A stretch of 64,000 bases of DNA from Saccharolobus solfataricus P2 (GCF_000007005.1 NC_002754.1); one strand, 5' to 3'. Numbered from the stretch's first letter, positions 6,610 to 51,693 are shown. Numbers and translations: made by a program. Notes: generated from the sequence alone by a model not told the origin.

Positions 6610-6880
6610 TATTTAAAGATTTGGGATTACATCTCTCATCTGGTGGGCAGTCGAGTGGATCAGAGATCCACTCCCATTCGAATAGGGGACTTTCATCCAT
6701 AACGTCTAGTCCCTTAAGAGATACTAGATACTCCTCCCACAGTCCCATTAAGCCCTCAATCGAGCTGGGGAGGAGCATCATTAACATCACTAAAAGAATT
6801 TCAGAAAAAAGGATTATTTAAATATAAGGGGGCTATCCATCCCCGCTGGCGAGGCTTTCCGCCCCTTAACCTCCAATTTT
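6610..6880 (+). mobile_element. IS200/IS605-family right-end remnant
   Basis: Ends in ggggctatccatccccgc-tggcgaggctttccgcccc-ttaacctccaatttttgtaa; the distal part recurs at about 20298 and 54398. Confidence 0.55.
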
Positions 6881-6889
6881 TGTAAAGCA

Positions 6890-7741
6890 TTAAGCTAATG
6901 TATACAAGGTATCAATTAGATCCTCCATCTTCACTGAATACACTTCCATCTTACCTTGTCCTTTGGCGGAAATTATCAGAGATAATGCCTCAAAACCCGC
7001 TTTTACATTACTATCGGATCTGCAAATCGCCCTTTTCATGTCCTTATTTTGAACTATAATGTTACAATTTACTTTACCAAAGTTTACCTTAATGAGACCT
7101 AAATCTAGCTGAGATACCATCTCGTTAATCTTACTTAATATACTAGTAGCATCTCCACTGAACTCAAATAATGGTGTTAGCGATAATCCTTGTGTCGTTT
7201 TTTCTTTATCAGTTTCTTTATTAGTTAAACTCCTAATAATGTCTCCATATAATGATGGGAAATATACTCTTGCGTAAGTTGCGAAATGGTCTTCTACTAT
7301 ATGCTTTGCGAAATCAACGGCTGACTTTCCTAACATTTTATCTAATAGCGAATCGTTATACTTTACATTCGTCGCAACGTATAGCCTTGTCTGAGTATCT
7401 CCTAAACTTTTTGGCATAAATTCTATTGTAAACTCCAATTTTCCATCATCAGACATACCAGAATATTTTATGCTTTGCATGGTAACTTTCGGCCCATTGA
7501 AAATCCCCTCAGTGTATTTGAAGTCTTTATTGGTTCTCAATAATATGTACAGAGCTATGAACTCGTCTGTGGGTGCTGATAATTCCCTAATTCTATCTCC
7601 CATGATATACTCATCCTTTTGTTTATCCTTAAATTTTAAAATGGAAATATGTCCACTAACTCCACTAATAAACAGAGGATCCATAAGGAATTTTCTCACG
7701 ATCCAAATAGGGGAATTTAATGTCAATTCTGTGCTGTACAT
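6890..7741 (-). CDS. Hypothetical protein, possible N-terminal SRPBCC/CoxG-like fold
   Basis: 283-aa ORF; fold is a weak guess from the N-terminal pattern. Confidence 0.5.
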   Translation of the reverse strand: MYSTELTLNSPIWIVRKFLMDPLFISGVSGHISILKFKDKQKDEYIMGDRIRELSAPTDEFIALYILLRTNKDFKYTEGIFNGPKVTMQSIKYSGMSDDGKLEFTIEFMPKSLGDTQTRLYVATNVKYNDSLLDKMLGKSAVDFAKHIVEDHFATYARVYFPSLYGDIIRSLTNKETDKEKTTQGLSLTPLFEFSGDATSILSKINEMVSQLDLGLIKVNFGKVNCNIIVQNKDMKRAICRSDSNVKAGFEALSLIISAKGQGKMEVYSVKMEDLIDTLYTLA

Positions 7742-19237: not shown

Positions 19238-20292
19238 CGGTAGACCCAAAATCATTTTACAAAATACTTTCGATAAGGTAATATTAGTTTTGCAGAAGAT
19301 AAATGGAATTTATAACAATATAAAGAGTTCAACAAATTGAAGAAAGGCTTAAGGTGAAAAAGACTGTATTATCACAAGATGAACCACGATGATAACACTT
19401 GATCTTCCCCACCAAAATAACACTCAACAAATAGGGTATAAATTACTTTCCATATTAGACTTCCAAGGGAAAAAGGCAGAGAACCTAGAGACGCTGAAGG
19501 GAGAGAAGGAAATAGACATTTCAATAGACTGGACCACCAAAACCTGGTACGGGAAACCGGTGGAAGTAAGCTCGGAAAAGGGAAACTCATGGAACTACGC
19601 CACTGAAATGACTAAACATAATGGGAAAGTGCTCCTACTGGCTTTCGTCACACAAGTAAACGAGATGACCAAGGACTACATCGTGAAGATCCTCGTGGAG
19701 CAGGTTACTGCAATGGGGTTCAAGATAAGGTTGATAACTCTTGACGCAGGTTTCTACACAGTTGATGTGCTCAATTTCATTTCACAGTTTAAGTATATAA
19801 TTGCTGTGCCTGTTGGGGACATGAAGGTTTATGAGGAGTTTGATGGAGAGTATATGACAAATAGTAAGAGGCATAGGAGGGATGAGCAGGTTAAGTTCAG
19901 GCTTTTGGTCTATGGTAGGGAGAAGATTAAGAGGAAGAAGGTTGTTTACTTTGCTAGGGGGACTAATCTCGACCTACCGAAGAAGGAGGCGTTAAAGTTG
20001 TACGACAAGGTAAGGAGTCCCATAGAGACTTCTTACCGGAACATCAAGGCCCTCCTTCCCTTCACCAGTTCCACTAAGTTCGTCTTCCACATGTTGATCT
20101 TCGTTTTAGCCATGATCTTCTACTCCCTGTACACCGTATTTAAGGGTATGGCGAGAAGGGAAGAGTTCAGGTTATTACTAATTCTTTTGTTTCCTGGTGA
20201 TTTATTCAATCTAGAAAATTCTCTATTTAAGCTACTAGAAACACTTATTAATACAATAGATTTATTTTTGTAAAATGATTTTGGGTCTACCG
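19238..20292 (+). mobile_element. ISH3-family element (ISC1200/ISC1225-like), internally deleted copy
   Basis: 27-bp perfect terminal IR cggtagacccaaaatcattttacaaaa (19238-19264 / 20266-20292) around a transposase ORF. Confidence 0.9.
19389..20273 (+). CDS. ISH3-family DDE transposase lacking about 52 internal N-terminal residues
   Basis: SIDWTT, TLDAGFY and RSPIETSYR motifs; alignment to 53404-54378 shows the in-frame gap. Confidence 0.85.
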   Translation: MITLDLPHQNNTQQIGYKLLSILDFQGKKAENLETLKGEKEIDISIDWTTKTWYGKPVEVSSEKGNSWNYATEMTKHNGKVLLLAFVTQVNEMTKDYIVKILVEQVTAMGFKIRLITLDAGFYTVDVLNFISQFKYIIAVPVGDMKVYEEFDGEYMTNSKRHRRDEQVKFRLLVYGREKIKRKKVVYFARGTNLDLPKKEALKLYDKVRSPIETSYRNIKALLPFTSSTKFVFHMLIFVLAMIFYSLYTVFKGMARREEFRLLLILLFPGDLFNLENSLFKLLETLINTIDLFL

Positions 20293-20517
20293 CAGAGAGG
20301 CGAGGCTTTCCGCCCCCTTAACCTCCAATTTTAGTAAATAAGCCGTTAGCTTCTCCTCCAATTACTACCACTGTAGTTCTCATTTTCATAGGATTACATC
20401 TGACTGATATTTATTAACGTTATCCTAAATTTTATTTATGGAGAATGCATTGTATCATCTTTATAAACTTAACTTCACAATTAAATATTAAAATTTAAAT
20501 ATATGTATACATAAATA

Positions 20518-33364: not shown

Positions 33365-33747
33365 AGTTACAGTTTAATTTTAGGGTAAAAATAAGTGACT
33401 CATGAGGAAGTTGGTAGTATAGTCAATGAGATATAATATGTTTCTTGGACTAGGAAAAATACTTTAATCATTTTATGATTTAAGAATCGAAATATCCTAC
33501 TAAATACTTTAATTTTCTCAGATGCTATGCTATTAAGTTTCTTAAATTCCAAACCGAATAACTAAGAATAAGTTTAACGTAGCTAAAAGATAAAATTTGA
33601 TAGATATCTCATATTCTAACCATTAAGCTGTAAATTGTTTTCCTAATCTTCCAAACGTATATAAGAGTATCAATTTTAATAGCTTCACTTTATGAAGTCT
33701 AGTCAGCTTAATTAATTTGTAGCTCAGTGACTATACCATAATCTCGT

Positions 33748-33971
33748 GAGAGTGTCCGGAATGTAAAAAACTGAATTTTAATTTTTGAGAATAAATTGAT
33801 TCTTAGCGTTATCTTGGATTAAATTGTAGTAATACTTAAGTTATGGGAGGAGAGAGTAGTACCATGACACGTACACTAAGACGCATCCCAAACTTAGTGT
33901 ACTATTCTCTCCCCCCAAGAGAGGATATGCCGTGGAGGGAAAAATGATTAACGGATATCAAACCCGTGCTA
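33748..33971 (+). mobile_element. ISC1234-like element, left-end fragment
   Basis: IR gagagtgtccggaatgtaa and 5' region similar to 38647 onward; cut by the next IS. Confidence 0.85.
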
Positions 33972-35261
33972 GAGAGAGTGTCCCAAGCGCAAATAATTGA
34001 ATAAATATAGTATGATAGAAAAATAATTTTATAATTAATTAAGAATAAAATATAATTATATCTTTCAGTATAACGAGAGATTAAGCTTATATTGTAATGG
34101 AAAATAATCAAGTATAGAGAAAAACAGAATTTCCAACATAGTCCACACTACCTTGATCAACTCTCGCGGTACAAGTTAGTGGGCGAGTTGACTCTCCGGA
34201 ACACGCGATAACACAGAAGTGTAGATGTAGGAGTTGTAAATCAACGCGATAACGTAGACAAAGAACTCGACCATACCCTTTTCAGTAGCGTAAGGCCTCC
34301 AATACCTCCTCAAGAAGATCCCAAAGAACTCCACATACCTCCTGAAACTAGAGAAACCTATCAACCAGGTCGAGGACTTCCCCACGAAGCCCCTATCCAC
34401 TACCTTATAACCGCTGCGAGAGAAGCCAACCTTATTGTCCGGAAAATTGGCCAGTTCCACTTGAATCTCGTGAACTATCATTGTTGGCGACATGAGGTTG
34501 AAGACCTTGAAGCCGAAGTAACTCCTGTTCCTCTTCTTTGTAAACTCTCCCTTGAACCTCCTCCTCGCTTTGCACTTAATGTAAAAGAAGAGCGTGTTAG
34601 CCGCCTCCCTGTACTTCCTCTGCCTTAGGTCTAGCTCAAACTTCTTCTTCAATGTTTCCTTGTTCCTCTTCCCGAAGGGTACCTCGATTAGGAAGGAATC
34701 CACGATCCACAGCTTTCCAACCTTTCCGTATAACGCACTGCTAGGTAAGTAGTCGGCAAGTCTACTCATCTTCCCCTCCAACTCCTTGGCGTACTCCTTG
34801 AACAGAGTCTTTACCTCTCCCCTAAATTTCTTTGCCCTCCTATGGATCTCCGACTTAGACTTGTACTCGCCTAGGAACCACCTTACCACCACGTCTGACT
34901 CGTAGTAGCTCCGCACGTCCCTGTAGGAGCACGTCCACACAATCATTACTATTAACGCTCTCAATATGAAGAGGTCAGAGAGACGCGACAGCACTTCAGA
35001 CGTGATCAGCATGTAGTTCATTTTCACAAGTGTTTTATGCCTTGCTGATAAATGTTCATAGGGAACCGGGCCGTTGTAGTATTCTATCCAATGCTTCATG
35101 TGAATCGGTACTACATCGTCCCGGTTCCCTTTAAGTATTACGCGACTTTTTGCTTCAAGCGAAAATTCAAAATTTCTCAGTAATTCACGATATCTTTTGA
35201 ATTATTATCTATAAACCTTTACATAGATTTATTCAATTATTTGCACTTGGGACACTCTCTC
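33972..35261 (-). mobile_element. ISC1290-like IS5-group element, 1290 bp
   Basis: 35-bp IRs with one mismatch (33972-34006 / 35227-35261); no target-site duplication visible. Confidence 0.85.
34176..35099 (-). CDS. ISC1290-like transposase
   Basis: WIVDSF, VVDRGF, YVEFFG motifs shared with 38742-39701. Confidence 0.85.
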   Translation of the reverse strand: MKHWIEYYNGPVPYEHLSARHKTLVKMNYMLITSEVLSRLSDLFILRALIVMIVWTCSYRDVRSYYESDVVVRWFLGEYKSKSEIHRRAKKFRGEVKTLFKEYAKELEGKMSRLADYLPSSALYGKVGKLWIVDSFLIEVPFGKRNKETLKKKFELDLRQRKYREAANTLFFYIKCKARRRFKGEFTKKRNRSYFGFKVFNLMSPTMIVHEIQVELANFPDNKVGFSRSGYKVVDRGFVGKSSTWLIGFSSFRRYVEFFGIFLRRYWRPYATEKGMVEFFVYVIALIYNSYIYTSVLSRVPESQLAH

Positions 35262-37005: not shown

Positions 37006-38646
37006 CAGTTTAGCTATAGTGAACTCTATTTAAAAACTTATAACGAAATATGCATTACTATTCGTTAGACAAATTAAGGAAAGACACTAATTGGCCTATG
37101 AAAAAACTTATATTTAATTACAAGACGATAAAATAAAATGATTAGGTTTATAGGTAATAATAGGCGTAACCTTATTACTGCTTTGATACTTTACCTACTT
37201 ACGTTAGTTCCTATTTATGTATTTCTATTTAGCAATGGATATTTGAACTTCTATGGCCCCAATTTGCCACTCTTCTCTGGAAAAGAAGTCGAACACTTAC
37301 TAGCCGCATCAATATATAACCCTGAATATGGATTTTCTGTAAATGACGGTATTTATTTTTTATATTTACTTATTTTTACATCATTAGGTATTTACAATAT
37401 TATTATATTATACAAGATTTTTCTTATTATCACCTTTTCTATAACATTTTTGTTATTATATACAATGATAAATAAAGCAATAAATATTTTTAAAATTAGT
37501 AGATATAAAAGCTTATCACTAATAATTGGAGTATTATTCTTTTTACTTAATCCTTTATATTTAGAGTACGTTGCGTTTAATTTTTATAACCTTATATGGG
37601 GAGTTATAATATTTTCTTACATCTTAATAAAACTAATTGATATTGTAGTAAATGATAAAAACGTGACTAAACTTGACATATTAAAATCTGGTATAGCCCT
37701 AGGTTTTTCGGGATTAATGGATCCAAGACTTTATATTTGGGGCTCATATATTCTAATATTGACATTTATAATTGTCATTATAATTAAGCCCAGATTAATA
37801 TTAAAGTTAATAAAATATCTTTCATTAACTTACATATCGTCATTACCTATAATCGCTTACATATATTATTTATTCGTTTATCCTTCATTAATAACACAAG
37901 CAAGCACAATAAACGCTATAACAGTACCAGCTTATAGGCCAGATACTTATTCTTATATCGCAACGTGGTCTGAGAATTCTTTACTCTTTAACGTCTTTGC
38001 TTTCATAAATTCTGAGTGGACTTCTATAGTATATGCTCCACCTTCAATTCTCTTTTATCCTAGAACACAATGGTGGTTCTTTCCGCATTTCGGTAATAAT
38101 TCCTTAATATTGCTGCCGCCTGGCATAATAACTTATATTTGGTTGGCATCTCTCTACATTTTCTTCATAGTAGCAGCACTAGCATTATTTGATAGAAAAA
38201 GAACACTTGCCTCTTCTTTGTTATTCATTCCAATGTTACTCATTATTTCATTATCTGCAGGAACAAACGTTCCTATTAAGGAATTTGTATATTTGCTAGA
38301 GATAGATCCTTCAAAACTACCTATTGTTGGAGGAATATTTGCCACAACTTTTGCAATTCCTTATTATGCTGAGGTCATGGCTCTGCCTTTTGCAAGTTAT
38401 CTTTCCATACTTGGTACCAATTATTTATTAAATAGAATTAATAAGGAGATTCTAAAGAAAATTGCGGTTAGTATAATAATTGTGCTAGCAGTGTTTGCCA
38501 GCTGGCAATACTTTAACGGTACTCTATACCCGTCAGAAGTCACCGGATCTTTCCCTGGTAATAGTATATCCTTAGAAGGATATTATTATCCTTTAAATCC
38601 TCCACCTCAATGGGTTCACGTAATGAATCTCTTATCAACCTCACGT

Positions 38647-39874
38647 GAGAGTGTCCGGAATGTAAAAAATTGAATTTTTATTGGCAAGAATAAATTGGTT
38701 TTTAGCATTATCTTGGATTAAATTGGAGTAACACTTAAGTTATGGGAGTAGAGGGTAGTACCATGGCAAGAACATTAAGACACATACCAAACTTGATGTA
38801 CTACCCTCTTCCCCCAATAGAGGATATGCCGTGGAGGGAAAAATGGTTAACGGAGATCAAGCCCGTGCTGGACGCCATGGATTTGGAGAGGGTTCTGGGC
38901 GAGGGCGCGCTGGTTTACTTGAAGTTGTTAATCGTCATGGTGCTCTACTCTTGCTCCTATAGGGACGCGGTGAAAATGGTTAACGTGAACGTGGTCGTGG
39001 CCTGGTTCGTGGGGAGGAAGGTGGGGAAGAGCACGCTGCACGACTTCGTGGGCAGGTTGTACGGGGTGAGGAAGAAGTTGTTGGAGATTTCCTTCAAGCT
39101 TGAGGAGAAGTGCCTACCCAGTTACCTCCCTGCGAGCGCGCATCTCGTGGACTTCATGGCGTGGCTAGTGGACTCCTTCCTACTGGACTTACCTCCTGGG
39201 AAGAGGAGCGTGGAGACCTTTCGGGAGAAGGCGGAGCTGGAGAGGAGGGAAGGTAACCTGGAGAGGGCCAGGAAGCTGCTCTCCCTGGGGAGAACCAAGA
39301 GGAGGTTCGAGGGAAGGTGGACCAAGAAGAGAGGGGTCTCGCACTACGGGCTCAAGGCCATAGCCGTGATCTCCGTCTCCCTCTTCGTGAGGTCCATCAC
39401 GGTGAAGCCGGCCAACTTCTCGGACAAGAGGTTCAAGTCACCGCTCAAGGGGATTAAGATCGCGGACAGGGGATTCTCTCCCTCCCCGACACAGCTCATA
39501 GCGCGGGAGAAGCCCTTCACTACCCTGAGGGCCCACGTGGAGTTCTTCGGCACCTACCTGAACGCGTTCTGGAGGCCCTACGGGACCACGACCTGGAGGA
39601 ACGACGTCTTCCTTCACGTCCTGGGAGTGATCTACAACATCAAGATGTTCCTCGCGATCCAACGGAGGACTCCTCCAGGACGTAGAGCCGTTCAGCTCTG
39701 AGACGCGCCTCCTCGCGATCAAGCAACGCTATGCGCGATAGGTAAATCCTCTCGTCTTGATATTTTTCCATTATAAAGTTTTTCTCGGTGATCCAGGTCC
39801 TACCCTTCTGGCAATATTAATATTTATCATTCTGTTTATCTATTCGTTCAGATAATTACATTCCGGACACTCTC
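38647..39874 (+). mobile_element. ISC1234-like IS5-group element, 1228 bp
   Basis: 19-bp perfect IR gagagtgtccggaatgtaa; flanking 4-bp ACGT duplication; GC-rich interior. Confidence 0.92.
38742..39701 (+). CDS. ISC1234-like transposase
   Basis: WLVDSF, IADRGF, HVEFFG. Confidence 0.9.
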   Translation: MGVEGSTMARTLRHIPNLMYYPLPPIEDMPWREKWLTEIKPVLDAMDLERVLGEGALVYLKLLIVMVLYSCSYRDAVKMVNVNVVVAWFVGRKVGKSTLHDFVGRLYGVRKKLLEISFKLEEKCLPSYLPASAHLVDFMAWLVDSFLLDLPPGKRSVETFREKAELERREGNLERARKLLSLGRTKRRFEGRWTKKRGVSHYGLKAIAVISVSLFVRSITVKPANFSDKRFKSPLKGIKIADRGFSPSPTQLIAREKPFTTLRAHVEFFGTYLNAFWRPYGTTTWRNDVFLHVLGVIYNIKMFLAIQRRTPPGRRAVQL

Positions 39875-50120: not shown

Positions 50121-50488
50121 TAAATAAATTATTGGAATTCTTCTAGTTAACTGAGAGATTTTAGTGTCATAACATTTTTATCTCCTACAAGAGAGGAATT
50201 TTGTATTACTTGCTTAAAGATTTAGTAAAAACTTAACGTGTAGTAGTTTTTACGGAAATTTCTCTTACTTAAATATCCTCATTCTTTTATACATCAATAA
50301 ATCTTATTTATTTTAGATGATAATATTTTAGGCTTTACAGTAAATAATTTAACTTCTCTTTCATTTTATAAAATTATTTTTAACGTTACATAATTACTGT
50401 AAGGATTTTCGTAGAAACCGTGGCGTAACTTTTCCTCTAATTCCACCACGGGCTAAGGGATCATACACACTCACCCTTCGAGGGAAAC

Positions 50489-50889
50489 ACCTATATAGGT
50501 TATATTAGCCGGGGAGAGTAATACTCCTCGGCTGGGGAAACGTGGTCGAGAGGGAAACTGAAGTAAAATCTTCGGGTAGCGGCGTGACAAGCCCCTACCG
50601 TCGGACTGAACATTGTGATAAAATTCACGAATATAGGTGTGACAAAGGGGTAGGGGTAATAGGACGTATCAAGAGATCATTTAATTACAAGTAGGGGGAG
50701 GGTGAGGAAGTACGAGAACAATAAAGAGGGTTATGAAGAAATCCTCAAGATGAAACCTTGTACAATAGTCCTAGAGCCCACTGGAGTATACGCAATAAGA
50801 CCTTCACAATACTTCAAGGAGAGGGGGATAAGAGTACTACAAGTTAGTCCAAACATACTATCGAGGGAGAAGGAGTTTAGGGGGAAGAA
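50489..50889 (+). mobile_element. IS110-family element, left end plus 5' third (copy C2)
   Basis: Closely similar to 23399-23850; truncated after EKEFRG. Confidence 0.9.
50507..50656 (+). ncRNA. Predicted bridge RNA of IS110 copy C2
   Basis: 5' hairpin 50507-50533; target loop 50545-50588; donor loop 50600-50643; guides match the left flank and the circle junction. Confidence 0.75.
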
Positions 50890-51693
50890 TCTTATCATCG
50901 ACATCAAAAATAAACGGTGTATAAAAATCTATTAATGGTGTATTATACTTATCCTTCGGTAAATCATTAGCAATTCTTTCTATAGCATCATTAAGACTTA
51001 CATTTGCTAATTTTCTTAATAAAGAATCATTTAAATAATATAAAAATATTTTAGTTATAGCATAAACTCCCTCTAAATCCTTTAGGGTCTTATAATCAGA
51101 ATAAAACGGATTATACAAGCGAATTAATACAACATTATCCAGTAAAGCTAATAAAGCACCTCGCAGATGAGCATGTATACTTATATCGTTTGCAGAGATC
51201 CAGCTCCTTTGAGCCATAAACCTATTAGCGTCTATTAATGCAACGAATTCATCACTACTTAAGTTCTCACATTTGTTAATATTCTCTTTAGCACATCTAA
51301 TAATTTTCTCTTTAATCCTATCATATATTTTGTTTCCGTATTTATAGTTTAGAAAGTACTTCACATATTCCTCGGCTTGTTTCTCAAATTGTTCTGTAAA
51401 ATTAACAACAAAAAGGTTTCCCTCACTATCTATATAAAATATCGGAGATAAGGTGATCGGATTTAAAATTATTGAGGGTAGTTTTTCAAGACTGTCTCTA
51501 AGACGCACGTTTTTTTAGCAAATTCACTAGTTTGCTCACTAATACTAGCTGTAATATCACAGTCTCTTCTCTCTTGTCCACCCCTCACTATAATACTTTT
51601 AAAGAGATCATGAAGATAACAAGATAAATAATTATTATTAATAAATTCCTTAAGATATTTTCTAAGTATCTCATCATGATTAATACTTCCCAT
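50890..51693 (-). pseudogene. cas10-like gene fragment (HD domain plus start of first palm), frameshifted and truncated
   Basis: YLHDLFK HD motif; ANDISIHAHL resembles the Cas10 (P/N)D(I/V)SLxxH motif; KTLKDLEG resembles KxLRDLxG; frame break at the A7 run 51510-51516. Confidence 0.5.

Follow-up and report, generated by a model that had tools for sequence, protein, structure and literature searches.

Positions 50492-50657 of the DNA analysed, a stretch of 64,000 nucleotides from Saccharolobus solfataricus P2 (GCF_000007005.1 NC_002754.1; hereafter the window), represent, as judged from the sequence, the bridge-RNA gene of an ISC1229-type element of the IS110 family, which has been kept in a dead, truncated copy (C2). 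A bridge-RNA gene of this type very probably works as in IS621. Indeed, the covariation between guides and insertion flanks among related copies, the invariance of the donor strands, the compensatory changes in the stems, and the homology of the recombinases to those of IS621 and ISCro4 together point to an IS110-type bridge RNA. The copy C2 itself is a fossil that cannot be autonomous, as its recombinase gene is both frameshifted and truncated. The initial annotation had regarded the locus as a programmable bridge recombinase; a working one is encoded neither by C2, cut off at 50889, nor by the other two copies in the window (C1 and C3), which are broken too.

Three ISC1229-type copies in the window

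Repeat analysis of the window yielded three related IS110-family pieces, all on the + strand and all dead. C2 (50492..50889), the left part of an ISC1229-type element, starts with TATATAGG and is a fragment of about 400 bp, its likeness to C1 stopping at 50889. The remains of its recombinase gene (50542..50889, +) open with a GTG at 50542, in a frame that crosses both loops described below until a 5-nt deletion in the GIDxSK region makes it stop at 50694; a piece of the DEDD domain follows (50702-50889) and ends abruptly. C1 (23399..24676) is of full length, with a frameshift near 24005 and a 48-nt insertion in the bottom strand of loop 2 (23549-96). C3 (~59985..60388) is a right-end fragment that is more diverged (81-88% identical to C1), with ACTGAATA-CC-ACAAGG as right junction. 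C3 was considered as the lost right part of C2 and was ruled out, given a gap of about 400 nt in element coordinates and a right flank that misfits the right guide of C2.

The start-to-start distances from C1 amount to 27,091 nt for C2 and 36,756 nt for C3. Three partial ISC1229 copies have been reported in S. solfataricus P2 at 1,449,398, 1,476,489, and 1,486,154 (PMC10883916), the spacing of which is exactly that of C1, C2, and C3, and the lengths coincide as well. This indicates that C2 had already been catalogued as a partial ISC1229. C1 and C2 are nearer to copies of the S. islandicus type than to the single intact copy type of P2 (L187, 74% protein identity). The intact copy of P2 lies at 1,745,648-1,746,880.

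Architecture and fold of the locus

All strings and coordinates given in the initial annotation turned out to be correct when checked against the sequence. A 5' hairpin (gccggggagag-taatact-cctcggc; 50505..50535, +), three pairs of which are altered on both sides among relatives, may belong to the RNA or represent an inverted repeat at promoter level. It is followed by loop 1 (50545-50588, +), composed of gtc (50545-47), gagagggaaact (50548-59), gaag-taaaat-cttc, gggtagcggcgt (50574-85), and gac (50586-88), and by loop 2 (50600-50643, +), composed of gtc (50600-02), ggactgaacatt (50603-14), gtga-taaaat-tcac, gaatataggtgt (50629-40), and gac (50641-43). Loop 1 is the putative target-binding loop (50545..50588), in which the left target guide (50548-59) has its pairing part at 50550-58 and the right target strand (50574-85) has ACG-CC-GCTACCC as its reverse complement. 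Loop 2 belongs to the putative donor-binding loop (50591..50657, +), enclosed by an outer stem of 9 bp (gcccctacc/ggtaggggt). Its left donor guide (50603-14) includes ACTGAAC, which is the right end of the element without the final G, and its right donor strand (50629-40) has ACA-CC-TATAT as its reverse complement. That ACTGAAC equals the right terminus of the element, as had been claimed, was confirmed in C1 (24667-73).

The locus also relates to its own insertion site. Directly upstream of the core dinucleotide CC (50490..50491, +) lies the left target (LT; GAGGGAAACA; 50480..50489, +), the first nine nucleotides of which equal the top strand of loop 1; GAGGGAAAC hence occurs both at 50550-58 and at 50480-88. 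This 9-nt identity, pointed out in the initial annotation, is not a matter of chance according to the pair statistics of the relatives given below. Similarly, ACACCTATAT (50487-96), across the left junction, was verified to be the reverse complement of the bottom strand of loop 2, ATATAGGTGT, which is the geometry of a handshake guide. The top strands of loop 1 in C1 and C2 differ exactly at cactat/gggaaa, as had been noticed before. The C1 top strand GACACTAT belongs to guide class E, but C1 sits at another left site; the reverse complement of its bottom strand, ACGCCCCC, agrees with C1's own right junction.

The region 50489-50700 folds with -71.2 kcal/mol (z = -4.9; 0/200 shuffles equally stable) into the 5' hairpin, the module 50545-50588, and a second module nested in the 50591-50657 stem. 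A scan of the window against Rfam gave zero matches at the gathering score, and a scan of 50400-50900 gave chance-level matches only (E > 1). The description of two identically built loops with TAAAAT is correct for C2 and fails as a general trait, since these apical loops are peculiar to C2, the relatives having CAAAGT, TGAAAT, or others. The stretch CUGA...UGAUAA in loop 2 resembles C/D boxes; this reading was abandoned, since several copies have GTGG and UGAU thus lacks conservation.

Covariation between guides and insertion flanks

About 100 related copies from Sulfolobaceae genomes and hot-spring metagenomes were compared. A protein scan of one genome per species yielded three close relatives (L001 from Sulfolobaceae RB850M, L002, and L003 from Metallosphaera yellowstonensis); the other 77 loci were distant bacterial or archaeal IS110 elements and were left out. 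When metagenomes were scanned for a DNA pattern, the conserved start of loop 2, 93 hot-spring contigs were obtained. Since the loops lie inside the annotated open reading frame (ORF), each guide variant constitutes a separate protein, and exact protein look-ups thus yielded 14 copies from finished genomes. Plasmids and phages or viruses were searched as well and yielded no copy. Metagenome contigs can be chimeric. One copy, L094, had been considered as a circle or tandem junction of right end and left end; it was not relied on, as 14 nt of left end are followed by divergence, and this reading is weakened further by CCTATATAGG being a palindrome.

When 19 diverse left ends were aligned (mean identity 83%), column entropy was high in the loop-1 strands only, namely in 8-9 bases of the top strand and in the 6-7 5' bases of the bottom strand. 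The loop-2 strands were invariant in these 19 copies and agree with the element's own ends. The hypervariable strands follow the insertion sites. For instance, the left flank of the intact copy L001 is ...GAGGGAAACA|CC, with which its top strand GAGGGAAAC agrees at 9/9 positions, and its bottom strand is reverse-complementary to the right junction ACGCCACTACCC at 12/12 positions. Agreement between top strand and left flank was found in at least 10 guide classes (A, B, D, E, E', F, L175, L179, L184/185, and L186). Guide and left flank read, respectively, CGTGAGTT and CGTGAATT in class B, ACGGGCAC and ACGGGCA-C in class D, GGCACTATCT and GACACTATCT in L180, and AAGTAAAA and AAGTGAAAA in L175, of which L177 is a decayed orthologue. 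They are the same string in class E (GACACTAT, e.g. L090), class F (CCCCTTAA), L179 (GACATTAT), L185 (TTTTACTCC), and L186 (CCCTTTGA). Compared with class E, L179 shows a paired C-to-T change, present in guide and flank alike. The reverse complement of the bottom strand agrees with the right junction in at least seven classes, and the first 5-7 nt past CC are matched by the bottom strand in L001, L115, L118, L125, L175, L176, L179, L180, L181, and L184.

When left matches were scored in one of three registers, 21 of the 48 non-redundant guide/flank pairs (44%) agreed at ≥7/8 positions, compared with 1.3% of 1650 cross-pairings of guides with flanks of unrelated copies. On the right side, a matching prefix of ≥5 nt occurred in 5/23 pairs (22%) against 3/402 cross-pairs (0.7%), the matches of L001 and L115 being additional to this count. 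The covariation between loop 1 and flanks across copies, which the initial annotation had proposed as a check, is thus present, and this outcome strongly supports its reading of an IS110-type bridge RNA of a thermoacidophilic archaeon, with target and donor loops, left guides of the same sense, and right guides that are complementary.

A mismatch to one flank or to both was seen in about half of the non-redundant copies, for example L177, L181, L182, L183, L187, the L003 type, and, on the left, C1; the single intact S. solfataricus copy type (L187) agrees with neither flank. These copies need secondary events, and their mismatches are attributed to recombination, gene conversion, decay, and chimeric metagenome assemblies, only some of which are documented. 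An inversion between copies is indicated by L174 (ACTGAACG-CC-TCCAATTTTT) and L183 (CCCCTTAA-CC-TATATAGG) in one S. islandicus genome, which represent the right and the left half, respectively, of one target site in occupied form, found unoccupied in the window at 20314-32 (see below). Similarly, L181 and L182 are identical copies at different sites, which points to conversion.

Crossover site, empty sites, and targets

Every right junction reads ...ACTGAACG-CC-RT (also written as ...TTATTACTGAACG-CC-), and every left junction reads LT-CC-TATATAGG, with a variable base preceding CC. In contrast with this double occurrence at the ends of inserted copies, CC occurs once in empty sites, which indicates that CC is the dinucleotide common to donor and target. 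The initial annotation had proposed an AC core; the junctions and the single-CC empty sites place the core at CC (50490-50491) instead and shift the element boundary 2-3 nt further right than it had been drawn. The element is thereby predicted to span TATATAGG to ACTGAACG. Unoccupied class-A targets read GAGGGAAA(C/T)A-CC-A(C/A)TACCC (L114, L118, L144), and empty sites of the target family of C2 read GAGGGAAACA-CC-ACTACCC. Since empty sites have ACACC where occupied right junctions have ACGCC, the G belongs to the right end of the element. The empty site forecast for C2 (GAGGGAA-AC-GCCGCT) was therefore wrong by one base and would read GAGGGAAACA-CC-GCTACCC; neither version was found within the window.

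Two further target classes were found unoccupied in the window. A site at 20314..20332 (+), CCCCTTAA-CC-TCCAATTTT, lies at the end of an IS5-like element and has a second copy at 54414-54432; a guide fitting this target class (GACCCCTTAACT) is present in L120. These class-F targets are the ends of an IS5-like element with a DDE transposase (19389-20273 and 53404-54378). A site at 61372..61390 (-), GACACCATCT-CC-ACTCTCA, is of the class of C1's guide and is homologous to the occupied site of L180.

The left flank of C2 (50398..50489, +) is a shortened copy of a repeat of at least ~150 nt (ccgtggcgtaactt...ttccaccacggg...aagggatcatacac..tcaccctt..gagggaaaca), within which lies the target that this guide class prefers. 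Dozens of related insertions are flanked by this repeat, and unoccupied copies exist too; a BLAST search with an unoccupied copy matched 50418-50476 and 25310-25383(-). Both class A, to which C2 belongs, and class D have their targets in this one dispersed repeat (≥150 nt), partial copies of which occur in the window at 50398-50489 and 25310-25383(-). IS110-family elements typically home to repeats and to other mobile elements.

Classes differ by 0-2 nt in the register of the left guide relative to CC. For classes A and E, as for L176, L179, L180, and L186, the ten bases directly 5' of CC are the aligned counterpart of the ten variable-plus-CT bases in the top strand. An alignment of eight bases reaching up to CC, with the conserved CU placed over the core (C-G, G.U), is seen in classes D and F, in L184/185, and in one class-B copy; the left donor guide (ACUGAAC-A-UU) has this geometry too. 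Most class-B copies are intermediate. The spacing of the left guide to the core thus looks flexible. Both right strands have GG opposite the CC core. At the core-equivalent position, the left strands have CU (target loop) or UU (donor loop), which allow G.U pairs only; in classes A and E, the matched left stretch ends just 5' of the core. In the commonest classes, neither left guide forms Watson-Crick pairs with the core.

Structural covariation of the stems

RNAalifold recovered the same architecture from the aligned left ends, with 97% of the cells paired. Both partners had changed in five pairs, of which three belong to the 5' hairpin, one to the base of loop 2 (G-C/A-U at 126:169), and one to the apical stem of loop 2 (A-U/G-C at 144:151). 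The number of compensated cells was 21, compared with at most five when the partners were slid. The stems of loop 1, the target loop, never vary and are uninformative for that reason.

Recombinase family and overlap of reading frame and guides

Pfam searches with the gene pieces in the window retrieved DEDD_Tnp_IS110 and Transposase_20. Indeed, all full-length relatives have both domains, DEDD (RuvC-like; PF01548) at the N-terminus and Transposase_20 (PF02371) at the C-terminus. The intact L001 protein matched those of ISCro4 (9t56; 4.7e-13) and IS621 (8wt6; 2.5e-12), at a similarity to these solved bridge recombinases of ~25-30% that is significant chiefly in the C-terminal domain. Its motifs GIDVSK, (L)EPTG, KTDfyDA, and ERSG align opposite the regions of the catalytic residues D, E, D, and D and S, the roles of which have been described for the bridge recombinase (PMC11208158). 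In a protein search, the family was confined to Sulfolobaceae (S. islandicus, S. shibatae, S. solfataricus, Sulfurisphaera, Acidianus, and Metallosphaera; 74-95% identity). Many relatives are labelled 'IS110 family RNA-guided transposase' at NCBI, and relatives share 77% identity with the 'second ORF in transposon ISC1229'. The GIDVSK motif is reached ~175 nt from the left end, and ~100 nt separate the stop codon from the right end, so that the layout is that of the IS110 group: a long left end, a short right end, no terminal inverted repeats, and 2 bp (CC) common with the target.

In intact copies, the frame is open from an ATG at the base of loop 1 across both loops, and the annotated proteins of 353-357 amino acids take in both loops. 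Between the loops and GIDVSK, no start codon was found besides a GTG within the right target strand, which implies that message and guide RNA must overlap. The open frame across the loops was rejected as evidence for coding, being not significant because just ~3 codons are free to vary.

Proposed mechanism and alternative explanations

By analogy with IS621, the RNA would be made, bound to the recombinase, and used in strand exchange along the IS621 pathway. An excised circular element would carry the donor junction ...TTATTACTGAACG-CC-TATATAGG..., and a predicted RNA of ~120-170 nt, transcribed from the left end, would fold into the two stem/internal-loop modules. The 5' strand of the target loop would have the same sense as the 8-10 nt of host DNA directly left of CC, and the 3' strand would be complementary to CC plus 5-7 nt rightward; its CGU would pair with the last bases of the donor (ACG) only after strand exchange and may thus represent a handshake guide. 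The donor-binding loop would apply the same scheme to the element's own right and left ends, and a tetramer of the RNA-bound DEDD/Ser recombinase would exchange strands at CC. Mutations in both target-loop strands would retarget the element, and such retargeting may have led to the at least 20 guide classes in Sulfolobaceae, several of which are aimed at the ends of mobile elements or at the dispersed repeat.

The handshake positions can be read from the strands. The reverse complement of the right target strand starts with ACG, the last three nucleotides of the donor, where the target has ACA. Conversely, the reverse complement of the right donor strand starts with ACA, the last three nucleotides of the class-A target, where the donor has ACG. 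Donor and target hence differ at the exact handshake position (G vs A), the handshake of the donor loop fitting some target classes only. In IS621, the bases that adjoin the core-pairing part in each right guide must be mismatched to the cognate DNA; once the top strands have been exchanged, they pair with the other DNA (PMC11208158).

Other explanations of the guide/flank agreement were weighed against a bridge RNA. The specificity might be encoded in the protein, a variable N-terminal peptide of the recombinase (MVE-xxx-EAKSS-xxx-VT...) reading the target instead of the RNA, as could be imagined from the frame of intact copies being open through both loops and from annotations that include them. 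However, literal identity of 8-12 nt on the left and reverse complementarity on the right are unexpected from a peptide code, the open frame carries no weight with just three codons truly free, and the solved homologues use RNA guides (PMC11208158), so that such a protein code is highly improbable. It is very improbable, too, that causality is reversed and that the loop strands were copied from the flanks after insertion, through gene conversion or templated repair. Differing guides at one site (L175 vs L177; L173 vs the L003 type) and identical copies at unrelated sites (L181, L182) do indicate that loop sequences are exchangeable between copies. Yet, one guide class (GAGGGAAAC / ACTACCC) recurs at dozens of separate repeat copies, unoccupied sites matching guides exist, and the right strand complements, as handshake guides do, a junction (donor ACG + CC + RT) that does not arise until the element has inserted, the ACG part being invariant; moreover, no mechanism for such copying is known.

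Coincidence in low-complexity, purine-rich DNA would be the simplest account of the 9-nt match in C2, and GAGGGAAAC does occur a third time in the window, at 51416-24(-) (three occurrences seen vs 0.37 expected). The probability of this account is nevertheless negligible in view of position-specific matches that recur in at least 10 unrelated guide sequences and of the excess over cross-pairs on the left (44% vs 1.3%) and on the right (22% vs 0.7%). Finally, the guides might act as DNA, with left-end hairpins or single-stranded DNA pairing with the target during transposition. Sequence analysis by itself cannot separate an RNA from a DNA strand, and the 5' hairpin could be an inverted repeat at the DNA level, but the near architectural match to the bridge RNA of IS621 (two loops, guide polarity, and handshake positions) and the homology of the recombinase to proteins solved with RNA (PMC11208158) render guiding by DNA improbable. 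A bolder version of the bridge-RNA reading, which is tentative and rather doubtful, would make the ISC1229 lineage a distinct archaeal bridge variant, with a CC core lacking Watson-Crick reading by the left guide (the left duplex being flexible by 0-2 nt from the cleavage site), a 3-nt handshake, and a bridge RNA that is the 5' part of a leaderless recombinase mRNA/ORF, one transcript serving as guide and message; it would have diversified naturally to at least 20 specificities, homing to other mobile elements at ~80°C.

Relation to known systems

To our knowledge, bridge recombinases, a two-year-old class of programmable DNA-rearranging enzymes, have so far been studied in mesophilic bacteria. 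IS110-group bridge RNA-recombinase systems of bacteria were described by Durrant et al. 2024 (PMC11208160) and Hiraizumi et al. 2024 (PMC11208158). Covariance models predict bridge RNAs in 85.7% of the ISfinder elements of the IS110 group, and the recombinase alignments of that study include ISC1229 and ISC1190 (PMC11208160). A 2024 preprint counted 662 archaeal IS110 recombinases without describing their RNAs, and a 2024 paper on Cbp1 handled ISC1229 as a conventional IS110 element (PMC10883916). The latter cites public Cappable-seq and RNA-seq datasets of strain P2 (GSE141290 and GSE226026). Targeted full-text literature searches found no description of a Sulfolobales bridge RNA, and the published ISC1229 accounts that they retrieved present a conventional IS110 element, without RNA, guides, or targets.

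The published rules for the guides of IS621 (LTG, RTG, LDG, and RDG) and for its handshake (PMC11208160, PMC11208158) fit the ISC1229-type copies. As in IS621, IS622, and ISCro4, the left end encodes the putative RNA, upstream of a DEDD(RuvC-like)+Tnp(Ser) recombinase, and a 5' stem-loop precedes the loop for target binding and that for donor binding. Likewise, the left guides are same-sense and the right guides complementary, a 2-nt core is common to donor and target, and the right strands run into handshake bases that match the non-cognate DNA (here donor ACG and target ACA). Shared features are, in addition, a hypervariable target guide next to a conserved donor guide and targets in dispersed repeats and other mobile elements. 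Unlike the IS621 systems, the ISC1229-type elements have an archaeal host growing at ~80°C, a CC instead of a CT core, a longer right target guide (core + 5-7 nt vs 2-5 nt), and a handshake of up to 3 nt. Moreover, their left guides end 0-2 nt before the core or cover it by C-G/G.U only, whereas the left guides of IS621 include the core (PMC11208160), and their RNA overlaps the annotated recombinase ORF, which begins at the base of the target loop. The variant details are the CC core, the long right guide, the 3-nt handshake, the flexible left register, and the ORF overlap. That ISC1229-type elements are an archaeal, hyperthermophilic member of the known bridge-RNA systems, and not a new kind of system, is well supported. 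The IS1111 group, with its seekRNA or right-end bridge RNAs, has the same recombinase family and RNA-guided target choice, but its RNA lies in the right end and is accompanied by long subterminal inverted repeats, in contrast to the left-end RNA of the ISC1229 type.

The concept of bridge RNAs is unchanged by these data, as a family-wide prediction existed before. They document an archaeal hyperthermophile lineage in which guides have been retargeted in a natural series, empty sites can be matched with occupied ones, and intact orthologues exist; guide rules, namely those on core identity, on guide register, and on the length of the handshake, can be studied there as in a natural experiment. 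This lineage is a possible source of thermostable enzymes and possibly of a genetic tool for Sulfolobales. In addition, it accounts for the target choice of ISC1229 copies in Saccharolobus genomes and for some of their past rearrangements. Archaeal C/D-box sRNA-Nop5 ribonucleoproteins (RNPs) have been proposed to descend from IS110 recombinase/bridge-RNA complexes (Vaysset et al. 2024, preprint), and the ISC1229 type provides a concrete archaeal system for testing this descent. Both have a bipartite guide RNA with guide strands of ~12 nt in internal loops, a protein with homology to the Nop domain, and an archaeal host lineage; the ISC1229 type differs in having no conserved C/D boxes, DNA targets, and a recombinase with catalytic residues.

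Probable rearrangement and possible gene conversion between copies

In S. islandicus L.S.2.15 (CP001399), two loci carrying ISC1229-type copies, L174 and L183 (at about 0.46 and 2.45 Mb), share the halves of a single target site, the left half lying beside L183 and the right half beside L174. Such a split site implies that the two copies took part in a large rearrangement, spanning about 2 Mb. A different kind of exchange is suggested by loci L181 and L182 of Sulfurisphaera ohwakuensis (AP031374), which possess the same recombinase and guides at different sites. Since these identical guides fit only one of the four junctions, gene conversion may have overwritten guides from copy to copy.

Landing sites and flanking DNA

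The main landing pad for two guide classes (copies sharing one target-guide sequence) was a dispersed repeat of at least 150 nt (gtgtttacccgtggcgtaactt...aagggatcatacac...gagggaaacaccactaccctcccatccac...), found at 50398-50489, 25310-25383 (minus strand), 38641-38872 and 33742-33973, as well as at 6770-7220 of the copy-bearing locus L118; a search of Rfam returned no match for it. It could be a MITE, the end of an element or an RNA gene. An unoccupied target, CCCCTTAA-CC-..., fitting another ISC1229 guide class, was present at the ends of both copies of an IS5-like element (19389-20337 and 53404-54437; 75-90% identical), which encodes a DUF4322 and DDE_Tnp_1 transposase. Two ORFs of 216 and 74 amino acids (50858-51693, minus strand), neither matching Pfam, adjoin the cut-off point of the truncated copy C2. 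The unannotated 216-amino-acid ORF contains, about 530 nt past the truncation, the third exact GAGGGAAAC of the window (51416-51424, minus strand), preceded by tatatagatagt and followed by C, which is probably a chance occurrence.

Element ends and recombinase start

Some 10 nt inward of the right and left ends alike is a direct repeat with the sequence AGGTTT(T)ATTA (24654-24664 and 23407-23418 in the full-length dead copy C1), which recurs at 50498-50508 in C2. In a circle junction, its two copies would sit at similar distances on either side of the CC core; they are TATA-box-like in sequence and could serve as promoter elements or protein-binding sites. Copy C1 further carries a 48-nt insertion (23549-23596) in the loop-2 bottom strand, the right donor guide, with a palindrome of its own inside (cctacg-tttgcaa-cgtagg). 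The right end contains a perfect 10-bp hairpin, gccacgtggg-ttgaaagga-cccacgtggc (24593-24621 in C1; 60313-60340 in the right-end fragment C3), whose loop motif TTGAAAG is similar to the sequence with which CRISPR repeats of Sulfolobales end on the 3' side. Cbp1, a protein that binds CRISPR repeats, has been reported to bind strongly next to ISC1229 copies, on their 3' flank (PMC10883916), and this hairpin is the likely site.

As annotated, the recombinase ORF starts with an ATG where the target-binding loop has its base (2452-3516 in L001, the intact copy of Sulfolobaceae RB850M; proteins P0002-P0028), so that in the predicted protein residues 3-6 and 12-14 vary with the guide. The ISC1229 protein in ISfinder, in contrast, has a different start, MAKGVIGIDVSK.
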